NCBI GenBank assembly: GCA_002189035.1
Contig: NEEC01000021.1
Location: 806,001-870,000 of the forward strand
Reading direction: 5' to 3'
DNA length: 64,000 nucleotides
From: Utricularia gibba
Lineage: Eukaryota; Plantae; Magnoliophyta
Positions within the stretch are counted from its first letter, which is position 1. Every line of letters begins with the position of its first letter. The translations under genes were made by a program, and so were the position numbers. Shown here one piece after another: positions 6,873 to 44,255 of the stretch. A model generated the notes under the pieces. That model did no database searches. It had not been told where the DNA came from and saw only the letters and a program-made list of their open reading frames with translations.

Positions 6873-8008
6873 TCAGTTCCCCGTGGATCTAAGCTCCTGC
6901 AACTGATCCCTTATCTGGCTCTGCACGAGCTCCAGCCTCTTGGAGAACACTTCCAACTCGAGAATCTGCTGCTTCCTCCACCGATCATCGGAGATTTTGT
7001 CGCAGGCTATGGCTCCGGGAAGGCACAGTGATAGGGGATTACGAGCTCCAAGTCCCTGTCCACTGCATAAGCCACTTGGGCATAGAAAAGAACCAGTTGA
7101 AGTTCCCAATAATTCCTTGAGTATTGGTGGCAAACAGCTCTTCACAGTCTCTTCGATCATAGTGGACATAGGCCCGAAACGCCCAGAACCGGAGCGGCTA
7201 TCGGCGTTACACCCACCGGAGGTGGCTGAATGCTGTTGACACTACAGTAGTTTCCATGTGGCTGCATTTTCTCCTCTAATTTTACAGCCCCAGCTCGATT
7301 CCTTTTTCTGGGGCGGGGGGCTTTGCTGTTCACATCGATCCCACATGGGACCGGGCTCTGGAAACCAGCAAAAGCTGGATTATTGAGATCGTCGTCGTCT
7401 TCCTCAACGGCGAGGCCTGTGGATCGAAAAGCAGCAGAGCCATTGGCGTTGGAGACCGTGCTACCCCAAATTTTGGAAGAAATTTCAAAGGTTAACTGGT
7501 CATGAGGGCTCTTAAAGATATAATCTTTGCCAGAGCTGAACCTGTTAACTAAATTGCGATACTTCTTCTTCAGCCTCCGAAGCTTCTCAACGAGCTGATT
7601 CTTGTTGAAATCGAGCTGGAATTTACTCCTGATCTGGTCATAAAACGCCGTCGTATCATGGTGGTGCTGCGATGAACCGTACGGACCGCAACGCTGACTG
7701 GTGTAATCGAGAAACCCCTGCAACAGCTCAATCTCGTCCTCGTCGGTCCACAAACGCTGGAAGAGCTTGCGGGACTCATCCGGCTTTTTGGATTCCGGAA
7801 GGAAAAGCTCTTGCTGTTGGAGATCAGGGACGCCGTGGACGGCGATAGTCACGAGGGCGGTGGAGGGAGGAGCGCGATCCAGGGCGATTGGCGCGGAGGA
7901 TGCGGAATCATCTTCATCGTGATCAGAGATCTGGTCATCATCGTCGTCAAGAAGATCCTCGTCTTCGTTGAAGACGGCGTCGTGACGAGGCACGGCGGCG
8001 GTAGCCAT
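6873..8008 (-). CDS. GeBP/STOREKEEPER-like (DUF573) transcription factor; intronless and split by an apparent 1-nt frameshift near 7170-7200
   Basis: ORF 8008-7157 contains FQRLWTDEDEIELLQGFLDY...NKNQLVEKLRRLKKKY. The family C-terminus IEETVKSCL...DDRWRKQQILELEVFSKRLELVQ is in the adjacent overlapping frame (7169-6873). Confidence 0.85.
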
Positions 8009-8086
8009 GGTGGCGATCCGATCCGGCGTGATCTGCACCGCCCAGGGAAAAAAGCTCGGTCAAATCAATAGACCCGATCCCAATAG

Positions 8087-17908: not shown

Positions 17909-18847
17909 GATACTTCGCTGCGTAGCTCTGTAGTAGTTTATCCTCCCTTCTCAGGTCATCTCAAAGGTAGAGAACCAGGTGATTCTTGAGTTCTTTGGAT
18001 GATTTTCCAGGCAGCATAAGAGAAAACTGTCCGGAGATGTAAACACAGCTCACTGGATTATGCACGTGCTTGAAAAATTCCAATTTTATTAATATTTATT
18101 TTTAATTAATTTTGATTTTAGGAGTTTTTAATAATCAATTTTTCAAATTTTTTGTGGATATATAATCACCTTTTTTATTATATGTTAAAAATTAGTTTTA
18201 AATAAAGGAGAAAATAAAGTGTGTATTGAGATATGAATACTATATTTTTATTCTTTAGATAATAATACTATGTAAATAATTATAATTATAATTTATATTT
18301 AATTTATTTGTTTCAATTTTCTCGCCTTTCTCATTCTAAGTTAAAATATGAAAATTATTTTAAAATTTAGGATAAAATACAATTTATGAATAAGTATTAA
18401 AATCATAATTTTAAATACATCTTAAAAATAAATCTATTTAATTATTTAATTTTTAGGGACATCCGGTTATGGACACGTGGATTTGAGTGATTGGGTATCG
18501 CTTTTTTAATGTGTGAAACGTTTTTTTTTTTTTTTTCAGTAATATGTGATTTGAGTGCGTTTGGGTAAATTTTCTAGATGTTTCTCTCCCCCTCCCCTCC
18601 ACCGTCGCGAAGAGGCTGCCGTGTATCGGAACCCTAATAGGATCTTAGCGAGTGCCCAATTCCCACACCTGATTCTAATTCAAGTTTGTAATCTTTGTGT
18701 TTTGGGGTATCGCGATCGAAAACCCTAATTGCGTATTCAATTCGTCGGGGTTTGATCCAGATCCGGCGTTGTTTTTGTGGGTTGTATCGCGTCTTTCACA
18801 GTTTTTTGTGATACCCATAATCGGGTGTAAATTGAAACTTGATTTGG

Positions 18848-20865
18848 ATGGATAGGGTTTGTAGGGAGGCGGGGCCTTGTTTTGTGCCGGAGTCACCTTC
18901 TTCTCCAATGGTTACGACATCGACAGCGATAGCGAATACGGTGAACGGATCTCATGATTTTAGGATTATGGGGTACTCTATGTCGAAGGGAATGGGAATT
19001 GGAAAGTACGTCGCATCCGACACGTTTATGGTAGGTGGGCATGAATGGGCGATCTATTTCTATCCGGATGGGAAAAGCGAGGAAGATAATGCGACATATG
19101 TCTCTCTTTTCATTGCTTTGGCAAGTGAGGGCACAGATGTGAGGGCGCTTTTCGAATTAAGCCTTCTGGATCAGAGTGGGAGGGGGAGGCATAAGGTTCA
19201 TAGCCATTTTGGCCGGACATTAGAAAGCGGACCTTATACACTTAAGTGCAGGGGAAGCATGTGGTAAGCTTATTATGATCTAATACATTGACATCTTTTA
19301 TCTGGAGGTGTAGATGCGAACCATGATGGATGATTATGATATATGTTCCCATATGCAAAGTATTCCGTGTGTTGTCAGGGTTGTTTGTAGGACATGCGCA
19401 GTGCTTTTAAGTTCTGAATATATTGTTTTAACGACAGGGGATACAAAAGATTCTTTAAACGAGCCAATTTGGAAGGTTCTGATTACCTAAAGGACGATTG
19501 CCTTCATGTGCATTGCTGCGTTGGTGTTGTTAAATCGCACACTGAGGGACCTAAGGTCTACTCCATACCATACCCGCCATCAGATATCGGTCAGCATTTT
19601 GGCCAGTTGCTTGAGAGTGGAGAAGGAACTGATATAGTTTTCGAAGTTGATGGTGAGACCTTTCCAGCCCACAAGTTGGTTATTGCTGCCCGATCCCCTG
19701 TTTTCAGAGCTCAGTTATATGGGCCAATGAAGGATCAGAATACCCAACTTGTGAAGGTTGAAGATATGGAGGCACCTGTTTTTAAGGTATTTTGAGTTAT
19801 TTGAATTCTTGATTGGGAAATCAACTTTGGGTTGACTACAAAATTTTCTGATGTTATCTTTGTTGAAAGTCGAGGTTAGGGGCCCTATAAAATATTGGCT
19901 CACATTGAGTGGCTTGAATTCAAGCCGATTTGTTCATACCATGTCTCTTATGAGGAGTGTTCTCCCCACATCATTAATCGATGTGTGAACTTTTTCAATC
20001 AACATCCCTGATGTGGTTTCAATAGCTCGGTTGTCGCTTTGTTTCTAGTGTTGTAGCATCACTGAGGAAATGACAATAATAATCACTGAGGAAATGAGCA
20101 GCACTTAGGAGTAAAGCTTGAATTTTAATTTTATTAGGTGTCGATGCTAGGATGGGTTTTTTTCTAGAATGTCAATAACATCATGTCATTTTATATTTTT
20201 ATGGGTGGAGTGAAGAAATTCTTGGTTGTTTCTTTCTAATCCATTCTCAGAGTGTAGCCTTTTGTTCCTTCTCTTGTAGGCTCTACTCCACTTTATGTAC
20301 TGGGATGCGCTGCCAGACATGGCAAGGCTCACTGGATCAAACTCAAAATGGGCTTCAACCCTGATTTCTCAGCATTTACTTGCAGCCGCTGATCGTTACG
20401 GTTTAGACAGACTAAGACTGCTTTGTGAGGCAACCCTTTGTGAGCAAGTTGCTATAAACACCGTTGCCACGACACTAGCCCTGGCAGAGCAGCACCACTG
20501 TTTTCAGTTGAAATCAGTTTGCCTCAAGTTTGTGGCGATGCCTGAAAATCTCAGAGGTAATCCTTGCAGCTTCTATCAAACCAAAAAAACACTTAACTAT
20601 CCTCACCCTCTAGCTTCATCTTGTTGGAAACAACAAATCTATTCAAATCAACTGAGCAGTGTAGCTGTTTTCCTCTCTCATTGCAGCTGTGATGCAGTCG
20701 GATGGCTTTGAATACTTGAAAGAAAGCTGCCCCAATGTCCTGACAGAATTACTGGAGCACGTAGCCAGAGTGAGCGAGCACTCCTCAGCAACCGGTAAGC
20801 AAGGAGTAGGAGACCTGATGGACAGAATCGAAGGCAACAGTCGACGTGTGAAGCAAAGGCTGTAG
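18848..20865 (+). CDS. BPM: BTB/POZ-MATH domain protein (BPM), 4 exons (18848-19263, 19438-19786, 20281-20557, 20687-20865)
   Basis: MATH domain [46 protein letters not shown] and BTB domain [33 protein letters not shown]. The paralogue number is not assignable. Confidence 0.93.
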
Positions 20866-21229
20866 CAGCTCCTCCTTGTTAATGACTGATGGTATCATCT
20901 GGCTTCCCATTGAATTCATCTGATCAGGATGTAGGTGTACATGTGCAACCCTGTAATGTCTTCTGCCTCCCATGAAGAATACACTTTGTATGGTTTTTGT
21001 ATCATTTGGCGCCTGTGATAACTCTTCTTGTACTCTTCACTGGGCAACTCCAGCATAAGTCTGTGGGTGATTGCCGTGCGTGTCCTCCGCGTCCGTACTG
21101 ACACGGGATGTGTCGCAACCCAAACCCAAATACGCCCAGACAAATCCCAAGTAAAAGATACGTGTGTATTAGAAAAAATAACCACTGTATTTTTAGTGTG
21201 TGAGAAAAATGGCTAACTTATGTGTAAAA

Positions 21230-21810
21230 ATCATAAGGTTATGGGCACTTATTATGAAAATATTCCAATTGTTATGTATTAAAATTTTGAATTTCTAACG
21301 AACTACAAATTATGTTATCGTTTTTTTAAAATGTAATTCTATTAAAAAGTTTTAATTCTATTAATATAAATAATATATATCATAATTAAAATAAAATATA
21401 TTTTATATGAAATTTACATGATTAAGTTTTACTTAATCAAAATTTAAGATAATTGTGTATAATTATGTAATAAGTTATTAATTGAGAACATGGAGATTAA
21501 ATTATCAAATAAAATATAATATAGAATACATATATTATTTTTCACTTTTCTCAAAAAATGAAATAATTAATAAATAATAAATTATAAATTATCATATTTA
21601 TTATATATGTATATGTAATAATATAATACGAAATAAGATTACATGAATATTTGTAAATAATTGATAAATATTATTGCATTATTGGTGAGAATCTTGAGAA
21701 TAATATTATCATTTTAATATATACATAATAAGATAGTACAAAATATAACAAAATGTGTATTTTTAGAATATTATTTTTTTAAAGTTGGGCCTCTAAATTG
21801 TATAAAAGGA
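21230..21810 (+). promoter_or_regulatory. AT-rich upstream module ending in TTGGGCC...TATAAAAG (TATA 21801-21808); related copies precede each fold-back locus
   Basis: Homologous blocks at about 25300-25750, 27350-28045 and 31367-32295 each end in a TGTATAAAAGG box immediately before the hairpin (TATA at 25740, 28037, 32286). Promoter function is inferred. Confidence 0.55.
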
Positions 21811-22738
21811 CTCCTCCATGGTACTACAATTTACACGAGTCAAATGTATTGTACACTGCACGCTCTTGGCGCTGGTCACGATGGCCATTTGCTCCAACCT
21901 CGGGAATCACCTTCCAACACTTTCTCCGGTGGGTGGCAGCGTCCATCATGGCAACGGCGACAAGGAGGAGTACGGTGCAGGCATCAGGAAGAAAAGGGCG
22001 ATAGGAACGATAGAGCTGCAAGAAGCTCAGAGGCATGAATTACGTATTTGATGGGCGATTCAATCCATTGAAGCAGAAGCTCCTGGTTTTTAAGGATCAG
22101 CAGGTGAATGAAACACAGAACAATGAAACAGCGCATGGGGGGAGATGGAAAGGGATCCTTGCGTTTGATTTGGTAGCTCACAAACAATACAGAAAGCAGT
22201 ATCAATACTGCGAGATTGAGCCGAGAATCATCCATCTTCTCCACGAGGAGAAGAGAAGACAGGAGGCATTTATCAGAGGATTAGAATCTGTCAATCTTCT
22301 GTGATGAATGCCTGGCTCATTCTTGCACTACTGATACTGCTTCCAGTGTTGTTGGTTAGCTACCAAATCCAAGGTGAAAATCCTTTCCATCTCCTCACCA
22401 TGCGCTTCTTCATTCTTCTGCGTTTTATTCATGTGGTGATCTGTAAAAATCAGTAGCTTCGGCTCCAATGGATCGGATCGTAAATCAAGTACGTAATTCA
22501 GGCGTCGGAGCTTCTTACAGCTCTATATTTCGTATCGCTCTTTCTTCCTAATAGCTGCTCCTTACTCCCCCTTGCTGCCGTTCCCATGATGACTGCCGTC
22601 ACCTGCTGGAGACAAGTATTGGAAGGTGCAACCCGAGGTCGATCAAAATGGCGATCGTCATCAACGCCACGAGTGTGTAATGTGCAATAACATTTCACTC
22701 ATGTAAATTGTAATATCGAGAGCCCTTTTATACAATTT
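21795..22738. repeat. Fold-back locus HP1: imperfect inverted repeat, arms about 21795-22232 and 22303-22738, loop about 70 nt
   Basis: Begins aaattgtataaaagg and ends ccttttatacaattt. The arms align colinearly along their whole length (roughly 75-80% by eye). Both arms are disrupted copies of a small membrane-protein ORF. Confidence 0.92.
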
Positions 22739-22740
22739 CT

Positions 22741-24780
22741 ATATGCTTCCTTTTAGCATGGAAGACCATATTTACTGTGAGATGAAGTGCATTCAAATTG
22801 TCGCAATGTAGTATCGGTGTGCAATTCAGATTGACCTTCAATTCTTTTAGAACAAACTGCAGCCAGATTACCTCTATTACTGTGTGTCATTGCTCTATAT
22901 TCCGCTTCAGTGTTAGATTTTGATACAGTTTGCTGCTTCTTTAAACACCAGGAGATCGAATTTGTACTAAGAAACACACAATATCTAGTGTTCGAGCATC
23001 TTGTGAGAGGGCAACTAGTCTAGTCTGCATCTGAGTACACCTCAAGACATAACTATGAGTCTCGTTAATATAGGAGTTCAAGATTCAATGTCTCTTTGAC
23101 ATAGCGTAAAATCCGATTGGCTTGAATTTAATGGTGTATAGTCGGGTCTTGCATAAACTGTGACACATAATTCATACTGTATGTGATATTTGGTCGTATG
23201 AATGTGAGATATTGTAGGACTCCAACCAATGCCCTGAAAGGTATTGGATCCTTGAGTTTCCTTTCCTCTTGAGTGATTTTGAACTTCAATACTTGTGACA
23301 TCACCACAGACTTGCAATCTTTTAATTCAAATCTGTCCAAAATGAAATGAGCATAGTGAGTTTGTGTTAGATGAAGACCTTGCTTAGAGTATGTCACTTG
23401 CATTCCAAGAAAATAATGCAATGGTCCAAGGTCGTTCATGGCAAATTCAGAGGACAATTTTTCAATGAGGTCATGTATGAGATGGGGAGCTATACATGTG
23501 ACAATGATAATATCAACATAAAGAAACAATACTAATGTTTCATTCCCTATATGAGCCACAAATAGTGAGAGATCAACAAAGGTGTGTGAAAAGCCTAACT
23601 GCAAGATAAACAAGCTAAACTTGCCAAACATGTGTCGAAAAGTTTTTATCTTTCATATATGGTGGTTATTTCATATATATATCTTCTTGAGTTTCACCAT
23701 ACAAAAAGGCATTTTTGATATCAAGTTGTATTATTTCTCAATTGTTGGCAAGTGCAATAGAAACACGAAGTCGGATCATACATGGTTGCACAACAAGTGA
23801 AAATGTGTTTTTGTAATTAATTCCATCAACCTGATTATACCTCTTGGTGATGTGTCTAGCCTTCAAACAATCAAAAGTTGCATCTGGGTTCAGCTTTGTT
23901 TTATAGATCCATTGGCACCTAATCACACGCATTCCCTCAACACATGGAACTAGAGTCCATGTGTTATTTTTTTTAAGTGCATCCATTTCATCATTCATGT
24001 AGCCCTTCCATCCTGGATGATTAAGTTCCTTTCGAAGCGTTCTGGGTTATGATGAAATAGAATAATGTCATTTCACATGGAAAGTATACTTCATATTCGA
24101 TTTGAGGATGCCAACTTGAGACCTTGTTGTCATAGAATGTGTTCTCTATACAGGAATGTCAAATAAGGAGAATGTAAAGACGGACCTAGGGGTGTTTGAT
24201 CAATTGTAGCACCTTGTTCACCTTCCTCAATTTCCACTGTGGCAGGAGAAAGGGAATTGTCATCATGAATGTCATCGTTGTGCATCCTAGCACTTATCTC
24301 CCCTGGATTAGATTCACCTTAAAGAGTGTGACCAGAATCATTTTTGGGCTCTCCAAGGCTAACACAATTCATAACATCACAAGTCTCCCCTGGAGCACTG
24401 TTACTGCCATCGTTGAGCTCTCCTAAATGATGACTACTGTTGTGACCTGTCTCCCTGTGAATTGAGGCCAGGGGTGGGACTTTGCAGTGTACCACTATCG
24501 GTGAGTTTAGGAGCAACAGATAGTGGAGGAACCACAATAGCACCCCTGAAACCAGCGGGTTCAAGGGCTGTCGACATGGGCAGGCTGGGGCCTGGAGATG
24601 CCTCATCGCAAACAGATGGATCCGGGGGAAAGTTTAGAGGTCCAACCGGTTCCGAACCGTACGATTTTGATTCGGAACCGCATGATTTCAGCGAACTGTT
24701 GTTTCCAAAATCACAGGTCACTATGGACCATGGTTTAGGTTTTTATTTGGTTCAAAATTGGAATTGATAATCTTGAATCA
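22741..24780 (-). mobile_element. Degenerate Ty1/Copia remnant (RT and part of RNase H; gag/integrase and LTRs not recognisable)
   Basis: Minus-strand frames give MNDEMDALKKNNTWTLVP...CQWIYKTK, LFLYVDIIIVT...FAMNDLGPLHYFLGMQV, LQYLTFIRPNITYSMNYVSQFMQDP and KKQQTVSKSNTEAEYRAM...[23 protein letters not shown], with frameshifts and stops. Confidence 0.9.
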
Positions 24781-25759
24781 AACCGTAACTTGAACTAATT
24801 TATTACTGTTTAAATGCGTTTCTCAAACACCCACATGAATCATTGGGTGTATCACTATGAAGTTTTAATATTTTTTAATTTTATATGTTTTTATATTAAT
24901 AAATGATATATTTAACAATATTAATTTTCATATTTTACTGGATATATTATATGATATTCTATGTTAATTTATAAAATACATTAATTTAAATTAATTTATA
25001 AAATACTCAAATAAATTATAATCAAAATCAATATAATTTATAATTTAAATAAATAAAATAAATGATAAAATTATCAATAATTGAAAATATATATGATAAA
25101 ATAAAATTGAATTGAATGGACTGATAGATGGACCCGAAGGCAAGGCTTGGGCCTACGACCATAGTTCAAAAACACGAGTAACATCAGTGGGAGGAGATGA
25201 GGCGTCAAGCAGTGGTTTAAAAATCATAGGAGATATGTTTTTAATTGGCAATCCATCTAGGTGATTTGAGATTTAAAAGTAATGGAGAAGTTATATTAAT
25301 ATAAATAATATCTATAAAAAATCAATAAAAAAATTATTTATACGAAATTTACACAATTAAGTTTTATTTAATCAGAATTTAAGATAATTGTGTATAATTA
25401 TGTAATAAGTTATTAGTTTGGAACATGGAGATTAAATAATCAAATATATAATATAATATAATATAAATATATTATTTTTCAATTTTCTCAAAAAAATGGG
25501 AGTAAAAAATAATTAATAATTAAGTGAATTATCATATTTATTTTTTTATATGTGTAATAAGATAATACGAAATAAGATTACATGAATATTTTTCAATAAT
25601 TGATGAATATTATTGAATTATTGGTGAGAATCTTCAGAGTAATATTTTCATTTTAATATGTACATAATAAGATAATACAAAATATGACTAAATGTATATT
25701 TTTAGAATATTATTTTTTTAAAGTTGGGCCTCTAAATTGTATAAAAGGACTCTCCATAT

Positions 25760-26586
25760 TACAATTTACATGAGTCAAATGTGTTATACATTGCACGCAC
25801 GTGGCGTTGGTCATGATGACCATTTGCTCCAACCTCGGGAATCACCTTCCAACACTTTCTCCGGTGGGTGGCAGCATCCATCACGGCAATGGCGACAGGG
25901 GGAGTACGGCGCAGGTATCAGGAAGTAAGAGGGAAATGAACGCTAGAGCTGTGAGAAGCTCAGAGGCTTGAATTACGGATTTCATGGGCGATCCAATCCA
26001 TTGAAGCAGAAGCTCCTGGTTTTTAAGGATCAGCAGGTGAACGAAACACAGAACGACGAAGCAGCACATGGGGGGAGATGGAAAGGGATCCTTGCGTCTG
26101 ATTTGGTAGCTCACCAACAACACTGGAAGCAGTATCATTGGTGCGAGGTTGAGCCAAGAATCTTCCATCTTCTCCACAAGGAGAAGAGAAGACTGGAGGT
26201 ATTTATCAGGGGATTAGAATCTCTCAATCTTCTGTGGTGAATACCTGGCTCATTCTCGCACTACTGATACTGCTTCCAGTGTTGCTGGTGAGCTACCAAA
26301 TCTAAGCCGACTATCCTTTCCATCTTCCCCATGCGCTTCTTCATTCTTCTGCTTTTTATTCATGTGGTGATCTGTAAACATCAGGAGCTTCGGCTCCAAT
26401 GGATCGGTTCATCCATCGAGACTGTAATTCAGGCGTCGAATCTTCTCACAGATCTAGCCTTCGTATCGCTCTTTCTTCCTGATAGCTGCTCCTTACTCCC
26501 CCTTGTCGCCGTTTCCATGATGGCCGCCGCCACCTGTTGGAGACGAGTGTGTGATGTGTAGTAACATTTCACTCATGTAAATTGTA
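25760..26586. repeat. Fold-back locus HP2: paralogue of HP1, loop about 26166-26236; right arm has a 57-bp deletion and lacks the inverted TATA
   Basis: tacaatttacatgag (25760) pairs with ctcatgtaaattgta (ends 26586). Left and right arms closely match those of HP1. Confidence 0.9.
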
Positions 26587-28005
26587 CCGTTTTTGATGTA
26601 TTTATATATGTGTTGTTAGGAATATATTATATGGTAAAATGTTATGTTATGTATGTAATTGTTGTAAAAATAGGTTAAATTTGCAATAATTGAACTCAAA
26701 AATCTAATGTTTCTTTTTAATGTATTTCTAAATTTTAACAGAATAAAAGTTAATATTAGCATTACATTTTTCGCGTTGATAAGTAAAAAGAACATAAAAA
26801 TTGTGGAAAATTGGTTTTAATGTAAATTAATTGCTTTTTAAATATTTTTTTAAAAAATCATATTATAAAAATATTTGTAAATAATTGCTGAATATTGTTT
26901 TTTATATGAATATGATGGTTTAGAATATAATTATCATGTTCATATAACTCAGGCTTTGATTACAATCCCCAAGTTGCTGAATCTAGGATCCAAGGCAAAT
27001 CTAGTTGAGGTTAAGAGACCCCCTCCATCATCGCCAATAAAAGCAACTCTGTGATCTGTAATACTAGTTTTCTGCATCGAACCTCGTATAGTATGCCAAG
27101 AGTTCCTTATGTGTAATTATGATGTTCCGCCTCATATAAGAGTGGAAGTATTTTAAACGAATTCTACATCGATTATAAATATGAGAGAAAATAAAATAAA
27201 ATAGAATGATCATATAAATCTTACATTAGATTTTTTCTTCAACATAACAAATGACCATTAATAGTAACTCTTAAATTAGACGTGTTTGAACTAAAATAAA
27301 GTGAAGATGGATAATCTTTTGGGAATTTCAAACAAACTGCAAATTATTTCATATTTTTTTAAAATGTAATTCAATTAAAAAGTTTTAATTAAATTATTAT
27401 AATTTATAAAATATATTATTATTTTTTAATAATTCACTACCATCGCAGAACCCTAATAGCGTATTACATATTCATATAACATCGTGTTATACATGTACAT
27501 GGAGATTTTATTTTCATTGGTACTCCATTTTACGTGATTCGAAATTTAAAAATAATAGAGAAATTATATTAATATAAATAATGTATGTTTAAAATTAAGT
27601 AAAATATAATTTATATTAAATTTAAATAATTTTAAGTTTTAACTTAATCAGAATTTAATATAATTGTGTATAATTATGTAATAAGTTATTCGCTCGGAAC
27701 ATGAAAATTAAATCATCAAAAATATAATAAAATATAGAATAAATATATTATTTTTCAATTTTTTAAAAAAAATGGGAGTAAAAAATAATTAACATTTAAG
27801 TGAATTATCATATTTATTATATATATGTGTGTAATAAGATAATACGAAATAAGATTACATGAATATCCGTAAATACTTAACAATTAACTGAATTATCATA
27901 TTTATTATGGTATTATATGAATGTAATGGCGGTGGGAATCTTGGGAATAATATTATCATTTTAATATGTACATAATAAGTTAATACAAAATATGAGTAAA
28001 TGTAG

Positions 28006-28915
28006 ATTTTTATAATATGAATTTTTTTATAAACTGTATAAAAGGACTCCCGGACTGTACAATATACAGTATTCTAATTGTATTATACAATAGACACCCT
28101 TGCAGGCGTTGGTGATGCTGGTGGTTCCACCTCACGTCGTAGGATGGGGCCCATTTTTCTCCATCCCCAGGATACACCAACCAGCACCTGTCTCCAGTGG
28201 GCGGCACCCATCGAACGGCGGCAAGGGGGAGGAAGACCCATGTCTGAGGAAGAAATAGGGTTAGGAAGGACACAGCTCTAACAAGCTCGGAAGGTTATTA
28301 TAATAAACATGGATCATATTACAAAAGATTAGAATCAATCGATTATTATTGAAACCTCCAAGTTTCTTACAGCTCTGTCATTCCTAACACTCTTTCTTCC
28401 TTATACCTCCCCCGTGGCGCCATTTCCATGATGGCTGCCACCGACTGGAGACAAGTGCTGGATGGTGCAGCCCGGGGATGGAGAAAAATGGGCAACATCC
28501 TACGACCACCCGCATCACCAGCGCCTGCAAGAGTGTCTAATGTATAATACAATTAGAATACCGTATACCGTACACTTTAGGGTGTGTTTGGTTTAACGGA
28601 ATGGGATAAAATGGGTTTAGTATACTTGAGTTTAAATAAAGTTGATGTATTGGGATTATTTTTTTAAGTAGTATTCAGTTATTGGAATTAACAATGAGAT
28701 TAAGTGGTTTTAAATAAAAGAAGGGAGGAATGTGGTTTTTAAATAAATCTATATAATTTTAGATTTATTTAAACCTATCAATTAAACACTTTATAATTCA
28801 TAATCCTAATTTTAAACCCATGTAATCCCATAAACCAAATATACTCTTACAGTACATGTCATTTTATACAATTTAGAGGCTCCACTATAAAAAAAAAATC
28901 ATATTATAAAATATT
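28006..28915. repeat. Fold-back locus HP3: short hairpin 28057-28573, with the outer part of the right arm displaced by a MITE
   Basis: gtattctaattgtattatacaatagacac pairs with gtgtctaatgtataatacaattagaatac (1 mismatch in 29). Loop about 28307-28342. The inverted TATA/flank resumes after 28849. Confidence 0.9.
28580..28846. mobile_element. Tourist-like (PIF/Harbinger) MITE, 267 bp
   Basis: Imperfect TIRs gggtgtgtttggttta / taaaccaaatatactc, TTA target-site duplication at 28577-28579 and 28847-28849, AT-rich non-coding interior. Confidence 0.85.
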
Positions 28916-29233
28916 TATAAATAAATGCTGAATATTATTTTGTTATGTGAATATGGTGCATTCGGAATGTAATTATCATATTCATATATTAAATGAATAA
29001 TTGTAAATAATTGGTGAATATTATTATTTTCTTTTGCATGAATATGATAGTGGTGCCTATACATCTCTGGTACCTGGGATCCCCGGTTCAGAATGTTGGG
29101 GATCCTGCTCTAGCTCGAGCTCAACTTTCGAGCAGTTCTCTCTCCTCACAAAAATGTCTGATCCAAGGCGAACCTTCTGGAGGTTTCGAGACCCCTCCAT
29201 CATCACCAACAAAGCAACTCTGTGATGTGTTTG

Positions 29234-29891
29234 CTCCATCATCACAAAACTTCGTACATCTTTTGTGTTTGCTCAAAATTATAGAGTGTGTCCAACAGCT
29301 TCTCATGATTGTAGACAGTGAGCAATCATGTGGCAGACAGCGTTCCGATATATGATCTATAGTGCTTCCCACACACTTGATAACCTTGTCCTTTACATGC
29401 CCATCATCCACTGCCTGACCCAATTTCCTCAGCCGCTTCACCATTGTGTTCACACAAGAGGTTAGATCACCCATGGATTCACCATTTTCTAAAAACAAAT
29501 TGTCCAGTATGTGCCATTGCTTGTCTATCTCTTTCTGCCTCTTTTCTATTGTCATGGCATGATTTTTTATTAGGATATTCCATGCCTTTTTGGGAGATCT
29601 GCACCCTAGGATGAGGTCATATGCTTCATCAACAACTGCCAATGTTAAGGCATGCATTGCTTTCTTTTTCTTCTTTTTGAGCTTCTTGTCAGCCGCACAA
29701 TCTATTTTTGAAGATCATGATTTTTTTTCTTTTGATTGAGCAGTGTCTGCTTGATCTTCTTCACCATGGTCTGCAAATAGGTTCCAAAGATCTAAGTTGT
29801 CCAGATGAACAGACATTTTGACGCCCCAGGCGTCATAGTCCCCTTTTCCATCAAACATAGGAGGAGGTATAAAATAAGGAGCAGAAGCCAT
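29234..29891 (-). pseudogene. Copia gag-like (DUF4219 plus UBN2-type) coding fragment with one in-frame stop, truncated at its 3' end
   Basis: MASAPYFIPPPMFDGKGDYDAWGVKMSVHLDNLDLW, then in the same frame after a TGA (29717-29715) KKAMHALTLAVVDEAYDLILGCRSPKKAWNIL...LENGESMGDLTSCVNTMVKRLRKLG. It fuses to the repeat-unit block near 29233. Confidence 0.7.
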
Positions 29892-30527
29892 TGATCTCAG
29901 AATGAGATAACAAGTTAAGCAACAAAAAAATAAGATAAAAACTGAGCTTGATGCTATTGTGACTTCCCCAGAAGATAATGTGTTCTTCGAAGAAAGAGAT
30001 GCCAAGAACGCGAAGGGTTTTGCGGGTTTCTGTGAACCCAATTTTCCTCCCTCTACATTCAAACTAGTTTTCAGTGTTTATATACATCAATTAATTCGTG
30101 CCCCATTTATTGGGCTAAATACTGTAAGTAAAAGGACCTGTGTAAAATAAATCTTCTCTTCGATCAATCAGCCTTTCTCCTGCATTAGATGCTGGTATCC
30201 AAACTCGATTTGATGGTTCAGGTTAGTATCCCACAGCTGTCACCATGTAAAGAGACATGTAGCTCACAAACTAGGAGCCTTGACATTTTCAAATTGGAGA
30301 AATTTGAATGAAGAAGAACTTAATTTTATTGTGTGTACACTTGTGTATTTATACTACTTGAGTGTGGATAGCCGTTGCACCCAAAGTGACTGTTGTTGAG
30401 CAGGTTACTGTTGCTGGTGACTTGGGCTTCTTCAAGGCTCGGGCTTCATGAGGCCTGACTTCAAGTGGTCTTGTTCGGCCCAAGATTGCCTGTCTTTGTT
30501 TGGCCCAGGATTGCCTCATCACTCATT

Positions 30528-31044
30528 AACATGGAACAAGAAATTCTTCAGTAACTTCTGAATGGATGGCTTGAAACGAATTATGCAATTAATCAATGCA
30601 ATATTCATTGAATTGCTAGCTAATATAGTGATAGGTCTTCCTTCTATTCCGCATGGTTAACGTACATTTTCAAGTAAAAGTATCAAGCACAAAACTAGCA
30701 TACCATCAAGGAGAGGAAGGCTCTCCCAAGGAACTTCAGCATCAGGCTTCGCTGCCCACACAATGGTCTTCACGAAGCCTCCATCTCCAGACAAATCAAT
30801 TGGATCACTCATGTTTTCCTCCAAGGATTCAACTGGTGAAAGCAGAAACTCAAACTTGTGAGGTAACTCATGATAAGCATTTCTATAGAATTTTACGAAG
30901 AACAACAATATTCAACGGAATTTTGCAACAAAAGTAGCAAAAATCTGTAAACTTTTCTCTCATCTGCGTTGAGATCAAACCATACACAACAATTTTGGCA
31001 TTTCTTTCTCAAGAAAAAACTTTGTCCGTAGAAAAGTAATAAGA
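30528..31044 (-). pseudogene. 5' fragment of FKBP20-1 (upstream region, exon 1 at 30812-30704, most of intron 1)
   Basis: Closely matches 34632-35133. Exon 1 reads [36 protein letters not shown]; no downstream exons. Confidence 0.88.
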
Positions 31045-31323
31045 TGTGAGGGCGCTTTTCGAATTAAGGCTTCTGGATCAGAGTGGGAGGGGGAGGCATA
31101 AGGTTCATGTTGAAACTTAGGATCCAATGAATCAGCGAGTATGCATGTGAAGCCTAAATACATAAGAAACGTGGATCACATTAGAAAAAATTAGGTCCAA
31201 CCGATTACTTTTGATCTGTAGTTTCTTATATACTAGATTATTCCACTTTCATTTTTCGATGTAGGATTGTGTATTCTAACAGTTCATAGCCATGTGGCCG
31301 GACATTAGAAAGCGGACCTTATA
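31042..31323 (+). pseudogene. Fragment of BPM exon 1, interrupted by a solo LTR
   Basis: 31042-31107 matches 19135-19200 and 31287-31323 matches about 19201-19238. The sequence then jumps to DNA homologous to the BPM 3' flank (about 21120). Confidence 0.88.
31108..31281. mobile_element. 174-bp solo LTR (Copia or TRIM type)
   Basis: TGTTG...TAACA termini and a perfect 5-bp TSD GTTCA (31103-31107, 31282-31286). The empty site is visible in intact BPM at about 19195-19205. Confidence 0.85.
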
Positions 31324-32240
31324 GGACAACCCACATACCCTCAGACAAATCCCAAGTAAAACATCAATCATAGGGTTATGCGCACTTATTATGGAAATAC
31401 TCCAGTTGTTGTGTATTAAAATTTTGAATTTCTAACAAACTACAAATGATTTTATCTCTTTTTAAAATGTCATTCAATTAAAAAGTTTTAATTAAATTAT
31501 TATAATTTATAAAATACCTTATTACAAATGTATATGAATTTTTCATGATTCAAGAAAGTCGCATTACCGTAATAATGTATTATATATTCATGTAACATTG
31601 TGTGATATATGTACACGGAGATTTTATTTTCATTGCAAACCATCATAGGTGATTCGAAACTTAAAAATAATAGAGAAATTATATTAATATAAATAATATA
31701 TATCAAAATTAAATAAAATATAACTTATATGAAATTTACTTGATTAAGTTTTACTTAATCAGAATTTAAGATAATTGTATATAATTTTGTAATAAGATAT
31801 TAGTTCGAAACATGGAGATTAAATAATCAAAAATAAAATCTAATATAGAATAAATATATTATTTTTCAATTTTCTCAAAAAATGGGAGTAATAATTAATT
31901 AACAATTAAGTGAATTATCATATTTATTATAAATATGTGTAATAAGATTACATGAATATCTGTAAATAATTAACAATTAAGTGAATTATCATATTTATTA
32001 TAAATATGTGTAATCAGATTGCATGAATATATGTAAAGACTTAACAATTAAGTGAATTATCATATTTATTATATATATGTGTAATAGTATAATACAAAAT
32101 AAGATTACATGAATATCTGTAAAGTGAATTATAATATTTATTAAAGATATTATATGAATGTAATGACGGTGGGAATCTTGGGAATAATATTATCATTTTA
32201 ATATATACATAATAAGTTAATACAAAATATGAGTAAATGC

Positions 32241-33348
32241 ATATTTTTATAATATGATTTTTTTTACAGTGGGACTTCTAAATTGTATAAAAGGGCTCGT
32301 GTACTATACAATATACGGTATTCTAATTATACGTGCATTATACAATGGAGACTCTTGCCGGAGTTGTTGATGCGGGTGGATCCACCTCCGGTCGCAGTAT
32401 GCTGCCCATTTTTCTCCGTCCCCGGGAAACACCATCGACCACCTGTCTCCAGTGGGTGGCACCCATTATGGGAACGGCGCCAAGGGGGAGGAAGCCCCAT
32501 GCACGAGGAAGAAATAGAGCTACTAAAGTCATAACTATAAGAAGCTCGGAGGCTTCAAATAGAAATTCAATGGATGCTCCGATCCATTGACGAAGGGTCT
32601 CCTGGTGTTTAAGTATCACCAGGTGAAAGAAAGAGAGCGCGATGAACCAGCGCATGGTGGGGAGTTGGAGGGGATCCTTCCCTTGGATCTCGTAGCTCAA
32701 TGATAATATGGGAAGCAAAATCGTATGGATCCAAGCATCTTCCATCTTCTCGACAAGGAAAAGAGAAAACTGGAGTTGTTTGTTGGTTGCGATCAAGTGC
32801 CATGAGGTAATTTATAAGAGTAGCGTAGCCTTTCGTGCAATCTCTCAATCTTCTATGGTGAATACTTGGAGTTGGAGCGCAATCTCGTTCTAGGGATTCT
32901 GTGTGTGTCGGGTAGAATGCTAGTGATCTCCCGAATCCAAAAGCATGGATATTCTCTTGGTTCCCATAGCACGCCGCTTTGTCCGTGCGGTGATCCTTAA
33001 ACATGGATCGGAGCATCCATTGAATTTCTATTTGAAGCCTCCGAGCTTCTTATAGTTATGACCTGAGTAACTCTATTTCTTCCTCGTGCATGGGGCTTCC
33101 TCCCCCTTGGCGCCGTTCCCATAATGGGTGCCACCCACTGGAGACAGGTGGTCGATGGTGTATCCCGGGGATGGAGAAAAATGGGCAGCATACTGCGACC
33201 GGAGGTGGATCCACCCGCATCACAAACGCCGGCAAGGGTCTCCATTGTATAATACACGTATAATTAGAATACCGTATAATGTACAGTACAGGAGTCCTTT
33301 TATACAATTTAGAAGCCCCACTGTAAAAAAATCATATTATAAAAATAT
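32241..33348. repeat. Fold-back locus HP4: near-perfect arms about 32241-32587 and 33003-33348, spacer about 415 nt
   Basis: Manual comparison of 32301-32587 with the reverse complement of the right arm gave 12 mismatches in 287 nt (about 96%), including an uninterrupted stretch of about 90 bp. Both arms carry the TATA box facing inward. Confidence 0.95.
32338..32745 (-). CDS. Uncharacterised small multi-pass membrane protein (135 aa); the only intact copy of the gene from which the HP arms derive
   Basis: Open frame MEDAWIHTILLPILSLSYEIQGKDPLQLPTMRWFIALSFFHLVILK...ELLIVMTLVALFLPRAWGFLPLGAVPIMGATHW with 3-4 hydrophobic segments. The same frame is traceable in the other arms. Expression is unknown. 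Confidence 0.5.
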   Translation of the reverse strand: MEDAWIHTILLPILSLSYEIQGKDPLQLPTMRWFIALSFFHLVILKHQETLRQWIGASIEFLFEASELLIVMTLVALFLPRAWGFLPLGAVPIMGATHWRQVVDGVSRGRRKMGSILRPEVDPPASTTPARVSIV

Positions 33349-33928
33349 TTGTAAATAATTGCTGAATATTATTTTTTATATGAATATGATGCATCCAGAA
33401 TGTAATTATCATATATATATATATATATATTAAATGCATATTTGTCGATAATTGGTGAATATTATTTTCTTTTGCATGAATATGATGGTGGTGCCTTTAC
33501 ATCTCTGGTACGGTTCACCTGGGATCCCGGTTCAAAATGTTGGGGATCGAGCTCAACTTTCGAGCAGTTCTCTCTCCTCACAAAACTGTCTTTGCATGTC
33601 TGAATCTAGGATCCAAGGCGAACCTTCTGGAGGTTTCGAGACCCCTCCATCATCACCAACAAAGCAACTCTGTGATGTGTAATACTAGTTTTCTGCATGG
33701 AACCTCGTATAGTATTCCAAGGGTCCCTGATGTGTAGTATTCGTTTTCTGATGTGCAAAGCTGAACGTCTTGCTGTGTGTGTGTATTTTGCTACCCAATA
33801 GTGTGCCTCTTTCAAACAAAGGGAGAAAGAGATTGATTTATGGTTTTAATTTTCAAACAAGAACTGTACTACAAAATACATGCAAGGTCTGGTTTAACAG
33901 GCACCTTATTTGATGGTGGTATTATGCA

Positions 33929-34917
33929 TCATTTTGCTTTACCTTTTCCCTTTCCTTGGCCTTTCTTGGCATCAAGTTTGGCTTGCATCCTTGCTGCAGC
34001 AGCTGCTTTGGCTTCTTCTCTTTTTTTCTTTTCTTCCTCCTTCAATGCCGCAGCAGCTTCTCTCTGCTTCTTCAGCTCCCTGAAAATGTTTGAAAGATAG
34101 CAATGCAGCTACATAAAAAGAAGGGCATTGTCTTGCAAATTCTGTAAGGGAATCATGCCATAAACTTACTCCAACCGAGCCTTCTCAATGTTAACACTGT
34201 TCACTGTAGATCCTTTCCGTGGCCGGCAGGCAATCAGCTCTATCTCGAAAACAAGGGTTGAACTGCATCAACAATTACTCAATCACATTCTGCTCTTTTG
34301 TCAACCTTCAGAAGTGGACCAGAGCAGTTTGAAATTTACTTGGGTGGAATCTCCGGTGGAGAACCTGCACTGCCATAGCCATATTCCGGCTTACACGTAA
34401 TCGTTGCGACCTCACCAACCTGAGAACATGTGCATATAAGGAAGATGCATAAACAAAAAAGGATGAGGGTAAGCAATAACCTAACCTTCATTGTCCTCAG
34501 GGCAATGTCCCAGGCTTGTATGACTGATCCCTTGCCCAGTTCAAAGGTGAAGATACTGTTATCCTCTTTGGTAGAATCAAAGACCTCTCCAGTCTCAGCA
34601 AGAATGCCTTCATAATGAACTATGGATACCAAACAATGGAACAAGAAATCATTCAGTAACTTCTGAATGGATGGCTTGAAACGAATTATGCAATTAATCA
34701 ATGAAATATTCATTGAATTGATAGCTAATATAGTGATAGGTCTTCCTCCTATTCCTCATGGTTAACGTAAATTTTCAAGTAAAAGTATCAAGCAAAAAAC
34801 TAGCATACCATCAAGAAGTGGAAGGCTATCTGTTGGAACTTCGGCATCAGGCTTCGCTGCCCGGACAATGGTCTTCAAGACACCTCCATCTCCAGACAAA
34901 TCAATTGGATCACTCAT
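33929..34917 (-). CDS. FKBP20-1: Peptidyl-prolyl cis-trans isomerase FKBP20-1 (exons 34917-34809, 34619-34486, 34419-34340, 34262-34170, 34079-33929)
   Basis: [18 protein letters not shown]...[17 protein letters not shown]...[46 protein letters not shown], ending in the basic tail [16 protein letters not shown]. Confidence 0.93.
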
Positions 34918-41774: not shown

Positions 41775-44255
41775 TCATCGCCCTTCTGACTTCACTAGTT
41801 GGGAGAAGACCCGGCTCATAGAAACGCCGGAAAGATCATCAACACTCGAGGTTTCGAACCGTTCAACAGAGGCACTTGTGCCAGGGTGGTTGAACTCACT
41901 CACTTGAGGTGAAAGTTCACCGATCACATTTGTGCTGTTTTCCTCAGGATCATTGAGGATCACAGCCTCTTGAAGCTGGAGGGCATACTCAAGGTTCCAT
42001 AGGACATCTCCCATGGAGGGCCGATCTACACCGAACTCAGATAAACACTTCTCTGCTGTTTCTCCAAACTTTCTGAGTGAATCTGGTTTTATTTTTCCAA
42101 CAAGGCTTGAGTCTATGATTTGATCTATCTGGCCCTTCTTGTGCCATTTCATTGCCCATTCGGCTAAGTTAACCATTTCTCGGGGAAGCGTTGGATCAAT
42201 CACAGGCCTTGCACAAAGAACCTCAAACAGCACAACCCCAAATGAGTAAACGTCTGATTTTTCTGTCAACTGCTGCCTTCTGAAGTATTCAGGATCTAGA
42301 TATCCAAAGCTCCCCTTTACTGCTGTACTCACATGGGTTTGATCAATCTCAGGCCCTGTTTTAGAGAGCCCGAAATCAGCAACCTTTGCCATGAGATTCT
42401 CATCAAGCAATATGTTTGCTGACTTTACATCACGGTGAATGACTGCTTTTGCATAGCCAGTGTGAAGATAATGCAGCCCTCTTGCTGCACCAATGCATAT
42501 CTCCAGTCTCTCCTTCCAGCTAAGGCTCGGGAGATTCGAGCCATATAGATGGCTTTTCAAGGTTCCCTTTTCCATGTATTCATAAACAAGGATCATTTCA
42601 TTCCTCTCATCACAGTAACCTATCAAGGAAACCAGATGGCGATGGCGGAACTGAGACAGCATCTCAATTTCAGTTCTGAACTCTGCTAGGCCTTGTTGAG
42701 ACCTGGGATTGCCTCTCTTGATCGCTACTGTTGTACCATCACTAAGAGTCCCCTGGTACACCTTCCCGAATCCACCAGCTCCTATCACCAAACTTTCATC
42801 GAAGTTGTTGGTTGCTTCCTGCATTGCTACAAAGGGTATGCGGTAGCTCAAGTTGGATCCAACACTAAGAGTCGTCCCAGTTGAATATCTACTCCCCAAA
42901 GTGTGAGAAGTTCCACCATTAACTGATATGGGAATCCAAGCCTTCGAATCTCGAAGCCGTTCTTGTTTCCTTTTTCTGTGTAGAAGAAACAGAAGTCCCA
43001 CAGTAACAAAAACAAGTAGAACCCCAATACAAATACCAGTGATCATTCCAACGTTCCGCCTTGATCGGAATGCTGGTAATGTCGATACTCCAGCAAGGCT
43101 ATTCTCAGAGTTGTTCATTTTCATGATCTCTAAACCATTCAGAAGGGCATCAGGGTAGGAGCTCTGTGGAGATGGACCAATGGTGACCCTAAGTGTATCT
43201 CTGTTGACTGTTGGGGTGACGACATCCATGAAGAAGGCAGAGGCCACCTGTCCAGGAGTTCTAGTACTTGGTTCCAGGTCTGGAGCAACAAGAACTGAAT
43301 CAATATAAACATCAAACACGAGCTGATTAGCAGAGGTGCTTATAATATCACAAAAATGCATCCGGATCAAGTACTGAAACCCAGGATCCAACTGAAACTG
43401 CCAAGTGACATTGAAGTTGCTGCTAGGATCAGAAGCAGAATTCATTTCTGTGCAAGTCCCATAAACTGTAGGAGGAGCATTATCTGTTGTTGCACCACCC
43501 ATAGGGTACTGAACTGCTGCTATATTGGATCTATTGGTTGCAAGGTTAGGCTGCAACAAGAAACCGCTATCTGAAATCCATGTTCTTCCCAACGAATCAT
43601 TCAAGAATGACACAAATGGTCCACCCATATTCAGCCTATACACAGTCTCCAGAGTTAAAGATGCAACTCTGTCGAATTGCCCAGATGGGTTATAAAGGGA
43701 AGCGCCAGGAACGATCAGATTATCAGGAACTGAGACAACCTCAATGGCATTGGCATAAGCAAAGGAATTACTAGAAGGTGAAAATGTGATCACCAGATCT
43801 CCAGTTGTTATATTCATACTGTATTCCCTCAAAGTAGCAGTCTGTGGACTAAAATTACTAAGCAGTGTAGTCCTCTGAGCAAAAACTGAGAAACTAGCAG
43901 AACTCATATTATAATTCTGATACACAAAGGGGAAGAAATGCAATCGGATCCAGTGCCTTCCAGCCTGATTAATCGGGAAGGTATACCTTGAAGGCCCATT
44001 AAATACTCTTGCTGTAGTTAAAACTGGCGCATATGCAGATGATTCTACAGAATTCAAGTTGGCATTCGCAAGAATCCCTTGGGGTGTTGTTACAGATACT
44101 GAAGACGAAGTATCAGCAACAAAAGTGATATTACCCAAAACAACATTGGTTGATGATCCACAATCTATGTAGTAATGATCAGATCCAATGGAACAGCAAG
44201 CTAGATCCAATAGCAGCAGAACCCAGAAACAATATCTTAGATTCGAACACCCCAT
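41775..44255 (-). CDS. HERK1: CrRLK1L receptor-like kinase, HERK1 type (826 aa, intronless)
   Basis: Signal peptide, malectin-like ectodomain (YYIDCGS, RHWIRLHFFPF), transmembrane segment, kinase domain (GAGGFGKVY, HRDVKSANILLD, DFGLSK) and the C-terminus SMSRVFSQLVKSEGR. Confidence 0.92.
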   Translation of the reverse strand: MGCSNLRYCFWVLLLLDLACCSIGSDHYYIDCGSSTNVVLGNITFVADTSSSVSVTTPQGILANANLNSVESSAYAPVLTTARVFNGPSRYTFPINQAGRHWIRLHFFPFVYQNYNMSSASFSVFAQRTTLLSNFSPQTATLREYSMNITTGDLVITFSPSSNSFAYANAIEVVSVPDNLIVPGASLYNPSGQFDRVASLTLETVYRLNMGGPFVSFLNDSLGRTWISDSGFLLQPNLATNRSNIAAVQYPMGGATTDNAPPTVYGTCTEMNSASDPSSNFNVTWQFQLDPGFQYLIRMHFCDIISTSANQLVFDVYIDSVLVAPDLEPSTRTPGQVASAFFMDVVTPTVNRDTLRVTIGPSPQSSYPDALLNGLEIMKMNNSENSLAGVSTLPAFRSRRNVGMITGICIGVLLVFVTVGLLFLLHRKRKQERLRDSKAWIPISVNGGTSHTLGSRYSTGTTLSVGSNLSYRIPFVAMQEATNNFDESLVIGAGGFGKVYQGTLSDGTTVAIKRGNPRSQQGLAEFRTEIEMLSQFRHRHLVSLIGYCDERNEMILVYEYMEKGTLKSHLYGSNLPSLSWKERLEICIGAARGLHYLHTGYAKAVIHRDVKSANILLDENLMAKVADFGLSKTGPEIDQTHVSTAVKGSFGYLDPEYFRRQQLTEKSDVYSFGVVLFEVLCARPVIDPTLPREMVNLAEWAMKWHKKGQIDQIIDSSLVGKIKPDSLRKFGETAEKCLSEFGVDRPSMGDVLWNLEYALQLQEAVILNDPEENSTNVIGELSPQVSEFNHPGTSASVERFETSSVDDLSGVSMSRVFSQLVKSEGR

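Follow-up and report, generated by a model that had tools for sequence, protein, structure and literature searches.

Four inverted repeats in a tandem array

The window analysed here, a 64,000-nucleotide stretch of Utricularia gibba DNA (contig NEEC01000021.1, positions 806,001 to 870,000), harbors four inverted repeats, HP1 to HP4, arranged in tandem as units A to D, each accompanied by an AT-rich module. The features of the array are as follows (positions are those of the window).

21229-21798, + strand: AT-rich upstream module of unit A, homologous to 25225-25737, 27323-28034 and 31366-32283; GC fraction 0.14-0.17
21795-22222, - strand: HP1 left arm; ORF with ATG at 22244, broken after 86 aa; TGTATAAAAGG at 21799-21809 (+)
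22314-22738, + strand: HP1 right arm; ORF in frame over about 135 codons with two stops; inverted TATA motif at 22724-22734
25225-25737, + strand: AT-rich upstream module of unit B, homologous to the modules of the other units
25734-26156, - strand: HP2 left arm; 98-aa ORF piece at 25881-26177; TATA motif at 25738-25748 (+)
26246-26560, + strand: HP2 right arm; outer end truncated, without the TATA motif
27323-28034, + strand: AT-rich upstream module of unit C, homologous to the modules of the other units
28030-28574, no strand assigned: HP3; internal deletion, both arms reduced to the C-terminal part of the ORF; a single TATA motif, at 28035-28045 (+)
30531-31108, no strand assigned: eroded FKBP (30531-30608, -) and BPM-MATH (30983-31108, +) fragments between units C and D, carried along by segmental duplication
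31366-32283, + strand: AT-rich upstream module of unit D, with internal tandem repeats of 71-86 nt at 31896-32136
32241-32587, - strand: HP4 left arm; TATA motif at 32284-32294 (+)
32341-32745, - strand: the only intact 135-aa helical or membrane-like ORF (HP4L); ATG at 32745, last codon at 32341, stop at 32338-32340
32588-33002, no strand assigned: HP4 spacer, with the N-terminal part of the left ORF, a promoter-like TATAAAT at the center and, in degenerate form, what remains of the N-terminal end of the right copy (ATG at about 32852, +)
33003-33348, + strand: HP4 right arm, matching the left arm at 95% identity; C-terminal 82 codons, interrupted by one stop; TATA motif in inverted orientation at 33296-33306

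An inverted-repeat search recovered all four repeats where the preliminary description had placed them. The arms are 79% identical over 433 nt in HP1, 79% identical in HP2 (25867-26156 and 26246-26534, with the left arm extending to 25734 in an alignment against HP1) and 95% identical in HP4, while HP3 comprises two sets of paired blocks, 28056-28125 with 28505-28574 at 90% identity and 28136-28212 with 28430-28506 at 87%. The ORF lies on the - strand in the left arms and on the + strand in the right arms, which bears out the claim that the arms are head-to-head copies of one small ORF, and seven of the eight arms are indeed broken, the sole intact copy being HP4L. Folded as single strands, all four units formed stems of about 150-430 bp, with energies of -676 kcal/mol for HP4 (z -39), -528 kcal/mol for HP1 (z -32), -463 kcal/mol for HP2 (z -19) and -310 kcal/mol for HP3 (z -28). 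The long inverted repeat giving an extended stem that is expected of a hairpin-siRNA (hp-siRNA) locus is thus found in each of HP1-HP4 (z -19 to -39), and these predicted hairpins support the earlier proposal that a transcript from an outer TATA box would read antisense, then sense, and fold.

Four + strand copies of the motif TGTATAAAAGG, at 21799, 25738, 28035 and 32284, each close a homologous AT-rich module (14-17% GC). The right arms of HP1 (22724-22734) and HP4 (33296-33306) carry the motif again at their outer ends, in inverted orientation, whereas those of HP2 and HP3 are truncated and lack it. The module and motif described earlier as preceding each repeat are therefore present at all four, but the motif sits inside the repeat and not upstream of it. 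Across the six arms that bear it, no invariant run is longer than TGTATAAAAGG (11 nt; the second longest has 6), against about 0.04-0.08 such runs expected by chance. This invariance is the one positive clue in the array, a possible sign of selection for an outward-facing promoter. Moreover, the AT-rich module has diverged less between the two lineages (0.13-0.15) than the arms have (0.30), a difference that, from these alignments, would seem to have no simple account under neutral decay.

These features invite the reading that the array is an active hp-siRNA or proto-MIRNA locus, in which Pol II would start from the outer TATA box and transcribe antisense then sense, and the resulting 150-430 bp of dsRNA would be processed by DCL2, DCL3 and DCL4 (DCL1 for HP3) into siRNAs that silence the intact HP4L, unlinked paralogues or both. 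In its favor, all four units fold into long hairpins, a canonical TATAAAAG box stands at the outer end of six of the eight arms as their best-conserved block, and arms within a lineage have stayed alike, those of HP4 being 95% matched. Inverted gene duplication is moreover an accepted way in which plants acquire young MIRNA and hairpin loci (PMC3237417; bioRxiv 10.1101/2024.07.25.605110), and gene-derived long inverted repeats in rice yield 21-22-nt siRNAs against paralogous clusters, although just a few hundred long inverted repeats were found to be expressed in that species (PMC8728187). We consider an active locus of this kind possible but unlikely given the evidence from arm mismatches, divergence, reads and protein searches that follows.

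Mismatch patterns, divergence and read coverage

Pairing in HP1 and HP2 has fallen to 79%, and the arm mismatches of HP1-HP4 carry no G:U-sparing, that is stem-preserving, bias. G:U-type mismatches in the + versus the - transcript numbered 27 versus 27 in HP1, 25 versus 16 in HP2, 10 versus 13 in HP3 and 3 versus 5 in HP4, and transversions made up about 43-52% of arm mismatches. Positions at which HP1 and HP2 differ on both arms were as frequent as chance predicts (4 observed, 4.2 expected); three of these four double changes are compensatory, which we counted against neutral decay, but compensatory changes were not in excess.

The copies also retain a record of their duplication. Four-way site patterns in HP1 and HP2 (LL|RR 34 versus 11|22 3) indicate that the inverted repeat predates the duplication that separated units A and B. 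The arm tree, (1L,2L,(1R,2R)) | (3L,3R,(4L,4R)), received 100% support, and within a unit the two arms have in common indels and substitutions that are private to their lineage. Read from the alignments, this tree is one of concerted evolution of the arms within each lineage together with recent homogenization of HP4, and the earlier description of stages that include a freshly homogenized and a shortened form agrees with it, HP4 being recently homogenized and HP3 a deletion derivative. Between units A and B divergence is uniform, at 0.116 for the module and 0.107-0.123 for the arms. Between units C and D, by contrast, divergence of the module (0.124) and arm (0.171) exceeds that of the fragments next to them, a dead piece of copia gag (0.071) and the FKBP and BPM remnants (0.060). 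Neither comparison supports the claim that the hairpins and their module persisted while their neighbors eroded. Depletion of CpG is far less pronounced in the arms (observed/expected 0.62-0.82) than in the copia fragments beside them (0.36-0.37), which counts against an active hairpin locus.

Evidence from RNA and DNA reads covers HP3 and HP4 among the four hairpins. No RNA contig lay on either, and depth was 0 over 27900-29869 and 31446-33800 (runs X3 and X1; two assemblies from two studies). In runs X3 and X14-16, about 10% of the words of 31366-34300 were present and none of those of HP4; the words found in X3 can only lie in 33801-34300, probably the 3' end of an FKBP gene, which serves as an internal control. 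The FKBP and BPM fragments at 30531-31108 gave only partial matches to RNA contigs, with loose ends and differing letters. Hairpin precursors are rapidly diced and seldom assembled from poly(A) RNA-seq, and because of this the missing contigs are weak evidence against an active locus, even with the neighboring probable FKBP end present. Taken with the mismatch counts and the CpG values, they nevertheless fail to sustain the notion of an expanding small-RNA locus.

In DNA run X8, from the same accession, HP4 had a depth of about 2-4x, equal to that of its flanks, and in run X13 it stood at about 1-3x the single-copy depth of that run (at least 85% likeness), depths that exclude a high-copy transposon. 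Contigs of X13 join 27962 to 32223 and 28352 to 33338, junctions that bear on a possible polymorphism in the number of units. These measurements bear on whether the units could be fold-back, MITE or MULE-type transposons with a captured gene fragment, as might be suggested by the AT-rich sequence flanking the repeats, by related AT-rich repeat motifs in both flanks (family D5) and by a possible 6-nt GTAAAT close to both ends of HP4. The GTAAAT match, however, is out of register by 2 nt at either end and falls within sequence of 15% GC, and no additional copies occur within the 64-kb window. In addition, the sequences to the left and right of the repeats are homologous from unit to unit, indicating that the repeats spread by segmental duplication and not by transposition. 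Together with the low copy number, this makes a transposon origin highly improbable.

Structural RNA models returned a match on HP3 (28149-28493, -) to Rfam MIR7533, a Lotus japonicus family (PMC13387551), with 59.6 bits, where the gathering score is 230. The HP3 hairpin is also matched weakly by MIR2118, MIR390, MIR6027 and MIR868, in the case of MIR2118 and MIR390 on both strands. With a score about a quarter of the gathering value and several unrelated miRNA models matching, we rejected membership of MIR7533 and regard the match as that of a generic long hairpin.

The 135-residue open reading frame

The intact HP4L ORF has a TATAAAT of its own at 32810-32816 (- strand), about 71 nt upstream of its ATG. 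Elsewhere the frame is kept in the right arm of HP1 (HP1R) with two stops, the right arm of HP4 (HP4R) has one stop and lacks the N-terminal half, and the remaining arms are frameshifted or truncated. Language-model features are protein-like in two copies only 48% identical to one another (Atlas recognition 2560 and 2465), and the nearest Atlas clusters are plant hypothetical proteins. The product is probably helical with about three transmembrane segments; its AlphaFold model is helical and weak (pLDDT 63, pTM 0.40). Homologues were sought in a word-indexed search of 5.8 billion proteins, using a single sequence (152-aa ORF) and a seven-row profile (A1), and in a HMMER scan of 1.84 billion representatives, with zero matches in both; no Pfam family matched, and an exact look-up found no record of the 135-aa protein. 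As three very large protein searches yielded no relative of the ORF, the array has no known target family. This weighs against an active hairpin locus and leaves the proposed regulation in trans of a membrane-protein family without the family it would act upon.

Comparison of the ORF copies over six frames detected no purifying selection, with dN/dS of 0.6-1.2 across all frames and of 0.6-0.9 in the ORF frame, which was no better than the others. Both indels that separate the lineages, of 33 nt and 3 nt, are in frame, a hint in the sequence of an earlier coding phase.

A further reading is that HP4L is a living, lineage-specific small membrane-protein gene expressed from the central TATAAAT; the remaining seven arms would be dead paralogues and the inverted partner either incidental or a source of antisense in cis only. 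The intact 135-codon frame with TATAAAT 71 nt upstream of its ATG would fit such a gene, as would the protein-like features of diverged copies, the in-frame indels and the frame held over about 135 codons in HP1R. Set against these are dN/dS near 1, the weak structural model, the failure to find a homologue or a record of the exact protein in the searches above and the lack of an RNA contig over HP4L. HP4L also differs by only 5% from the stop-containing HP4R, so that recent conversion may have left its frame open by chance. On this evidence we think a living gene rather improbable.

We also rejected the possibility that the outer TATA boxes drive convergent small genes. The ORF in the sense of these boxes, on the opposite strand (METLAG..., 85 aa), has an ATG only in HP4 and low protein recognition (1197), and its sole family match, DUF6667, falls below the 27-bit cut-off in both arms of HP4, which are nearly identical, with scores of 19 and 17 bits.

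Origin of the array and comparison with known systems

The reading we lean towards, with modest confidence, is that the array consists of tandemly amplified, gene-converted palindromic pseudogenes in neutral decay and is at most a candidate source of hpRNA. A small orphan gene of 135 aa was duplicated head-to-head once to form a palindrome, which was then copied four times through tandem segmental duplication; carried along in the duplicated segment were the AT-rich 3' flanking sequence, parts of the neighboring BPM and FKBP genes and stretches of copia elements. We infer that arm-to-arm gene conversion held the arms of each lineage alike for a time, that the locus as a whole has evolved neutrally and that the copies since then decayed mostly without selection, leaving seven of eight arms dead and the HP1 and HP2 arms drifted to 79%. 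A recent gene conversion would have re-homogenized the outer 347 nt of HP4, and an internal deletion shortened HP3. If the outer TATA boxes fire, fold-back RNA would be cut into siRNAs by Dicer-like enzymes, as with any long plant hairpin. On this reading the hairpin potential is a by-product of palindromic geometry, with no sign of being a selected trait.

The preliminary description of a hairpin-RNA or proto-MIRNA system thus holds for the structure, whereas its functional small-RNA reading was favored by none of the tests possible. A bolder form of that reading, in which the four hairpins function together as an hpRNA cluster, driven from their TATA boxes, that keeps a lineage-specific family of membrane-protein genes in check, within a genome-wide hairpin "nursery" at successive stages of MIRNA birth, strikes us as very unlikely. 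Were small RNAs made, the array would offer four dated stages of siRNA or miRNA gene origin in one locus: old and diverged, truncated, shortened, and freshly homogenized. As it stands, it suggests that tandem duplication and arm-to-arm conversion can mimic a MIRNA-birth series without detectable selection, and it is a caution for interpreting hairpin structures by sequence alone.

Arabidopsis IR71 is reportedly an endogenous long inverted repeat and hairpin-siRNA locus. LIRBase lists gene-derived long inverted repeats such as that of a rice germin-like protein gene pair (PMC8728187). Like these plant loci, the units described here are imperfect inverted gene copies with arms of hundreds of bp and a short loop, capable of forming hairpins; unlike them, they are known from structure in the sequence, whereas the plant loci are defined by sequenced siRNAs, some with mapped targets. 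The inverted-duplication model of MIRNA birth is said to go back to Allen et al. in 2004. It has since been updated (PMC3237417; bioRxiv 10.1101/2024.07.25.605110). The array resembles that model in the head-to-head duplication of a founder gene followed by decay and shortening of the arms, HP3 being the shortened form, but its hairpins are 5-20 times longer than typical pre-miRNAs, and its sole Rfam match, MIR7533, reached a quarter of the gathering score. In Drosophila simulans, hpRNAs suppress expanding selfish gene families, with hpRNA-target pairs and phenotypes demonstrated (PMC10292708, PMC10317233). The likeness to these is conceptual, in that the hairpins derive from copies of a gene family that is young and evolves quickly, and at times lie in tandem; they belong to another kingdom and another pathway, and their demonstrated pairs contrast with an array described from its structure. 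Large palindromes, finally, are maintained through arm-to-arm gene conversion as a general phenomenon. Although the units of this array, at 0.5-1.1 kb, are of far smaller size and homogenization has ceased in most of them, they resemble such palindromes in that the arms of one unit share private indels and substitutions and one unit is homogenized to 95%.

The reading frame carried by the repeat arms

All four tandem inverted repeats proposed in the preliminary description (HP1 to HP4, one in each of units A to D, each with a left arm, L, and a right arm, R) are present at the places it gave:

HP1, 21795-22222 / 22314-22738, arms 79% identical
HP2, ~25734-26156 / 26246-26560, arms 79% identical
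HP3, 28056-28212 / 28430-28574, arms 87-90% identical, 10-nt offset
HP4, 32241-32587 / 33003-33348, arms 95% identical

Computed folding bears out the fold-back potential of every unit, with z of -39 (HP4), -32 (HP1), -28 (HP3) and -19 (HP2). The AT-rich modules preceding the repeats are mutually homologous (GC 14-17%) and each closes with TGTATAAAAGG (21799, 25738, 28035 and 32284). The preliminary description placed this TATA motif at the end of the upstream module, but it is part of the repeat. Inverted copies at 22724-22734 (HP1) and 33296-33306 (HP4) give these two repeats a pair of convergent TATA boxes, whereas the right arms of HP2 and HP3 no longer have their outer end. Across the six arms carrying it, no invariant run is longer than TGTATAAAAGG (11 nt; second-longest 6), and about 0.04-0.08 such runs are expected by chance at the observed 48% column invariance, which would favour function.

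The arms carry a 135-aa open reading frame head-to-head, on the - strand in left arms and the + strand in right arms, with starts that meet centrally (the facing ATGs are separated by 57 nt in HP1 and by 107 nt in HP4). As proposed, seven of the eight arms are disrupted:

HP4L, ATG 32745 to 32341, -, sole open copy, 135 aa
HP1R, +, frame kept over ~135 codons, two stops
HP4R, +, one stop, N-terminal half degenerate
Remaining five arms, frameshifted or truncated

HP4L has its own TATAAAT at 32810-32816 (-), 71 nt upstream of its ATG. A language-model atlas recognized the frame as protein-like in two copies sharing 48% identity (recognition 2560 and 2465), its nearest clusters being plant hypothetical proteins of 129-186 aa, and the HP1/2 lineage differs from the HP3/4 lineage by two indels, 33 nt and 3 nt long, that both keep the frame; on these grounds, a real small gene is the probable source of the arms. 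The frame on the TATA-sense strand does not look protein-like (recognition 1197). The AlphaFold model of the ORF is helical and weak (pLDDT 63). Searches with the ORF returned no match in Pfam, none among 5.8 billion proteins with either single sequence or profile, and none in a HMMER scan of 1.84 billion representatives, and an exact look-up of the protein was empty. Because no membrane-protein family is detectable in these collections, the proposal that the array regulates such a family in trans is without support.

Growth and surroundings of the array

The window is plant nuclear DNA, and copia fragments also lie among the genes surrounding the array:

7157-8038, GeBP
18839-20711, BPM MATH and BACK exons
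22753-24000 (-), 29121-30062 (-) and 33556-33678, Ty1-copia fragments (RVT_2 and gag)
34336-34713, FKBP
41775-44294, malectin-like receptor kinase gene
45909-47351, PPR gene

Site patterns in HP1 and HP2 (LL|RR 34 versus 11|22 3) place the palindrome before the A/B duplication. The eight-arm tree separates (1L,2L,(1R,2R)) from (3L,3R,(4L,4R)) with 100% support; private changes, the 33-nt indel included, are therefore common to both arms of a lineage, as arm-to-arm gene conversion would produce. HP4, with 5% divergence between its arms, appears to show a recent conversion round, and HP3 arose from the HP3/4 type by internal deletion. Since unit flanks are homologous on both sides and MATH, FKBP and copia fragments were duplicated along, the array grew by segmental tandem duplication, not transposition.

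DNA contigs of run X13 join 27962/32223, 28352/33338 and 29114/33547 (the last pair also in X8, a DNA run from the window's accession), corresponding positions in units C and D, skipping ~4.3-5.0 kb; either accessions differ in the copy number of the array or the assembler collapsed the repeat. Copia fragments directly adjoin HP1, where right-arm homology ends just outside the TATA motif at the fragment's start, and are also found downstream of HP3 and of HP4. The segment 31147-31281, located between units C and D, is probably a high-copy MITE-like repeat (depth 559 versus ~25 single copy in X13, 86 versus ~4 in X8), with many differing loose contig ends on both sides. A second inverted duplication pairs 52740-53526 with 59390-60188 (~800 nt, 81% identity, 6 kb apart), and a type-P1 twister ribozyme match at 52891-52955 (-) (68.8 bits versus the Rfam gathering score of 67.2, E 1.5e-13) falls within a duplicated region (52.4-60.2 kb) that had separately been described as an intronic tRNA-like motif.

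Divergence of arms, modules and neighbours

Coding constraint was assessed in ten arm pairs, with dN/dS of 0.6-1.2 in all six frames. Mismatches tolerated as G:U number 27, 25, 10 and 3 (HP1-HP4) for a + strand transcript and 27, 16, 13 and 5 for a - strand one, transversions make up ~43-52% of arm mismatches, and a comparison of HP1 with HP2 shows 4 columns altered on both arms (4.2 expected), three of the four compensatory. As far as these comparisons reach, we see no convincing stem maintenance.

Nor did the hairpins and module persist while their neighbours eroded, as had been suggested: A-B divergence is alike in module (0.116) and arms (0.107-0.123), and between C and D the module (0.124) and arm (0.171) diverge more than the adjacent dead copia gag (0.071) and FKBP/BPM (0.060) fragments. 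Module and arm divergences are much closer to each other within lineage pairs than between lineages (e.g. 21229-21813 versus 31366-32298), where modules diverge by 0.13-0.15 and arms by ~0.30. This discordance could reflect mutation rates that depend on composition, gene conversion between modules or module constraint; the low module divergence would favour function.

An AT-rich motif (ATATTTGTAAATAATTG...GAATATTATT) is common to the left module and hairpin right flanks (31896-32136, 26852-26917, 28893-29043 and 33326-33484) and is tandemly repeated in unit D with a period of 71-86 nt; the palindrome is therefore embedded in minisatellite-like AT-rich DNA. Segments 26852-26917 and 33326-33391 are 98% identical, though the arms of their units differ by ~30%. 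The arms have a CpG o/e of 0.62-0.82 and the adjacent copia fragments one of 0.36-0.37, which argues weakly against long-term heavy RdDM.

Transcription, copy number and interpretation

Sequence words of HP4 occur in no RNA run; ~10% of the words of 31366-34300 are present in four. When RNA contigs of X3 and X1 were mapped on 27900-33800, which covers HP3 and HP4, both repeats and their modules had zero depth; assembled contigs cannot prove absence, and hairpin precursors are short-lived. Within that interval RNA pieces match only partially, in two places: 29955-30187, seen in X1 alone and at low depth, and 30730-31323, where the eroded FKBP/BPM fragments lie. Both matches continue with differing sequence, and paralogous transcripts are their probable source. 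Given X3's zero depth over HP4 and its module, its words must fall in 33801-34300, which is probably the 3' end of FKBP, so the array's neighbour was sampled by RNA-seq.

X8 matches the window exactly, and its depth on HP4 (2.3-4.3) equals that of the flanks; X13 depth there is ~1-3x the single-copy level of 20-35. With HP4 near single copy and no further hairpin copies found in the 64-kb window, a transposon origin is not supported. An Rfam search of the region gave nothing at gathering score. HP3 scores 59.6 bits against MIR7533, a Lotus japonicus family (PMC13387551), whose gathering score is 230; as several unrelated miRNA models also give weak matches there (on both strands for MIR2118 and MIR390), membership was rejected as a generic long-stem effect.

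We lean towards reading the array as a palindromic pair of copies of a small orphan gene, amplified in tandem and by now mostly dead, with hairpin potential as a by-product. That it is instead an active hpRNA locus seems rather unlikely. Long inverted repeats that are transcribed do give rise to siRNAs in plants, with gene-derived examples documented (PMC8728187, PMC10827316). Such repeats abound, however: LIRBase records 6.6 million in 424 genomes, many overlapping genes, and expression was found for only a few hundred in rice libraries (PMC8728187).
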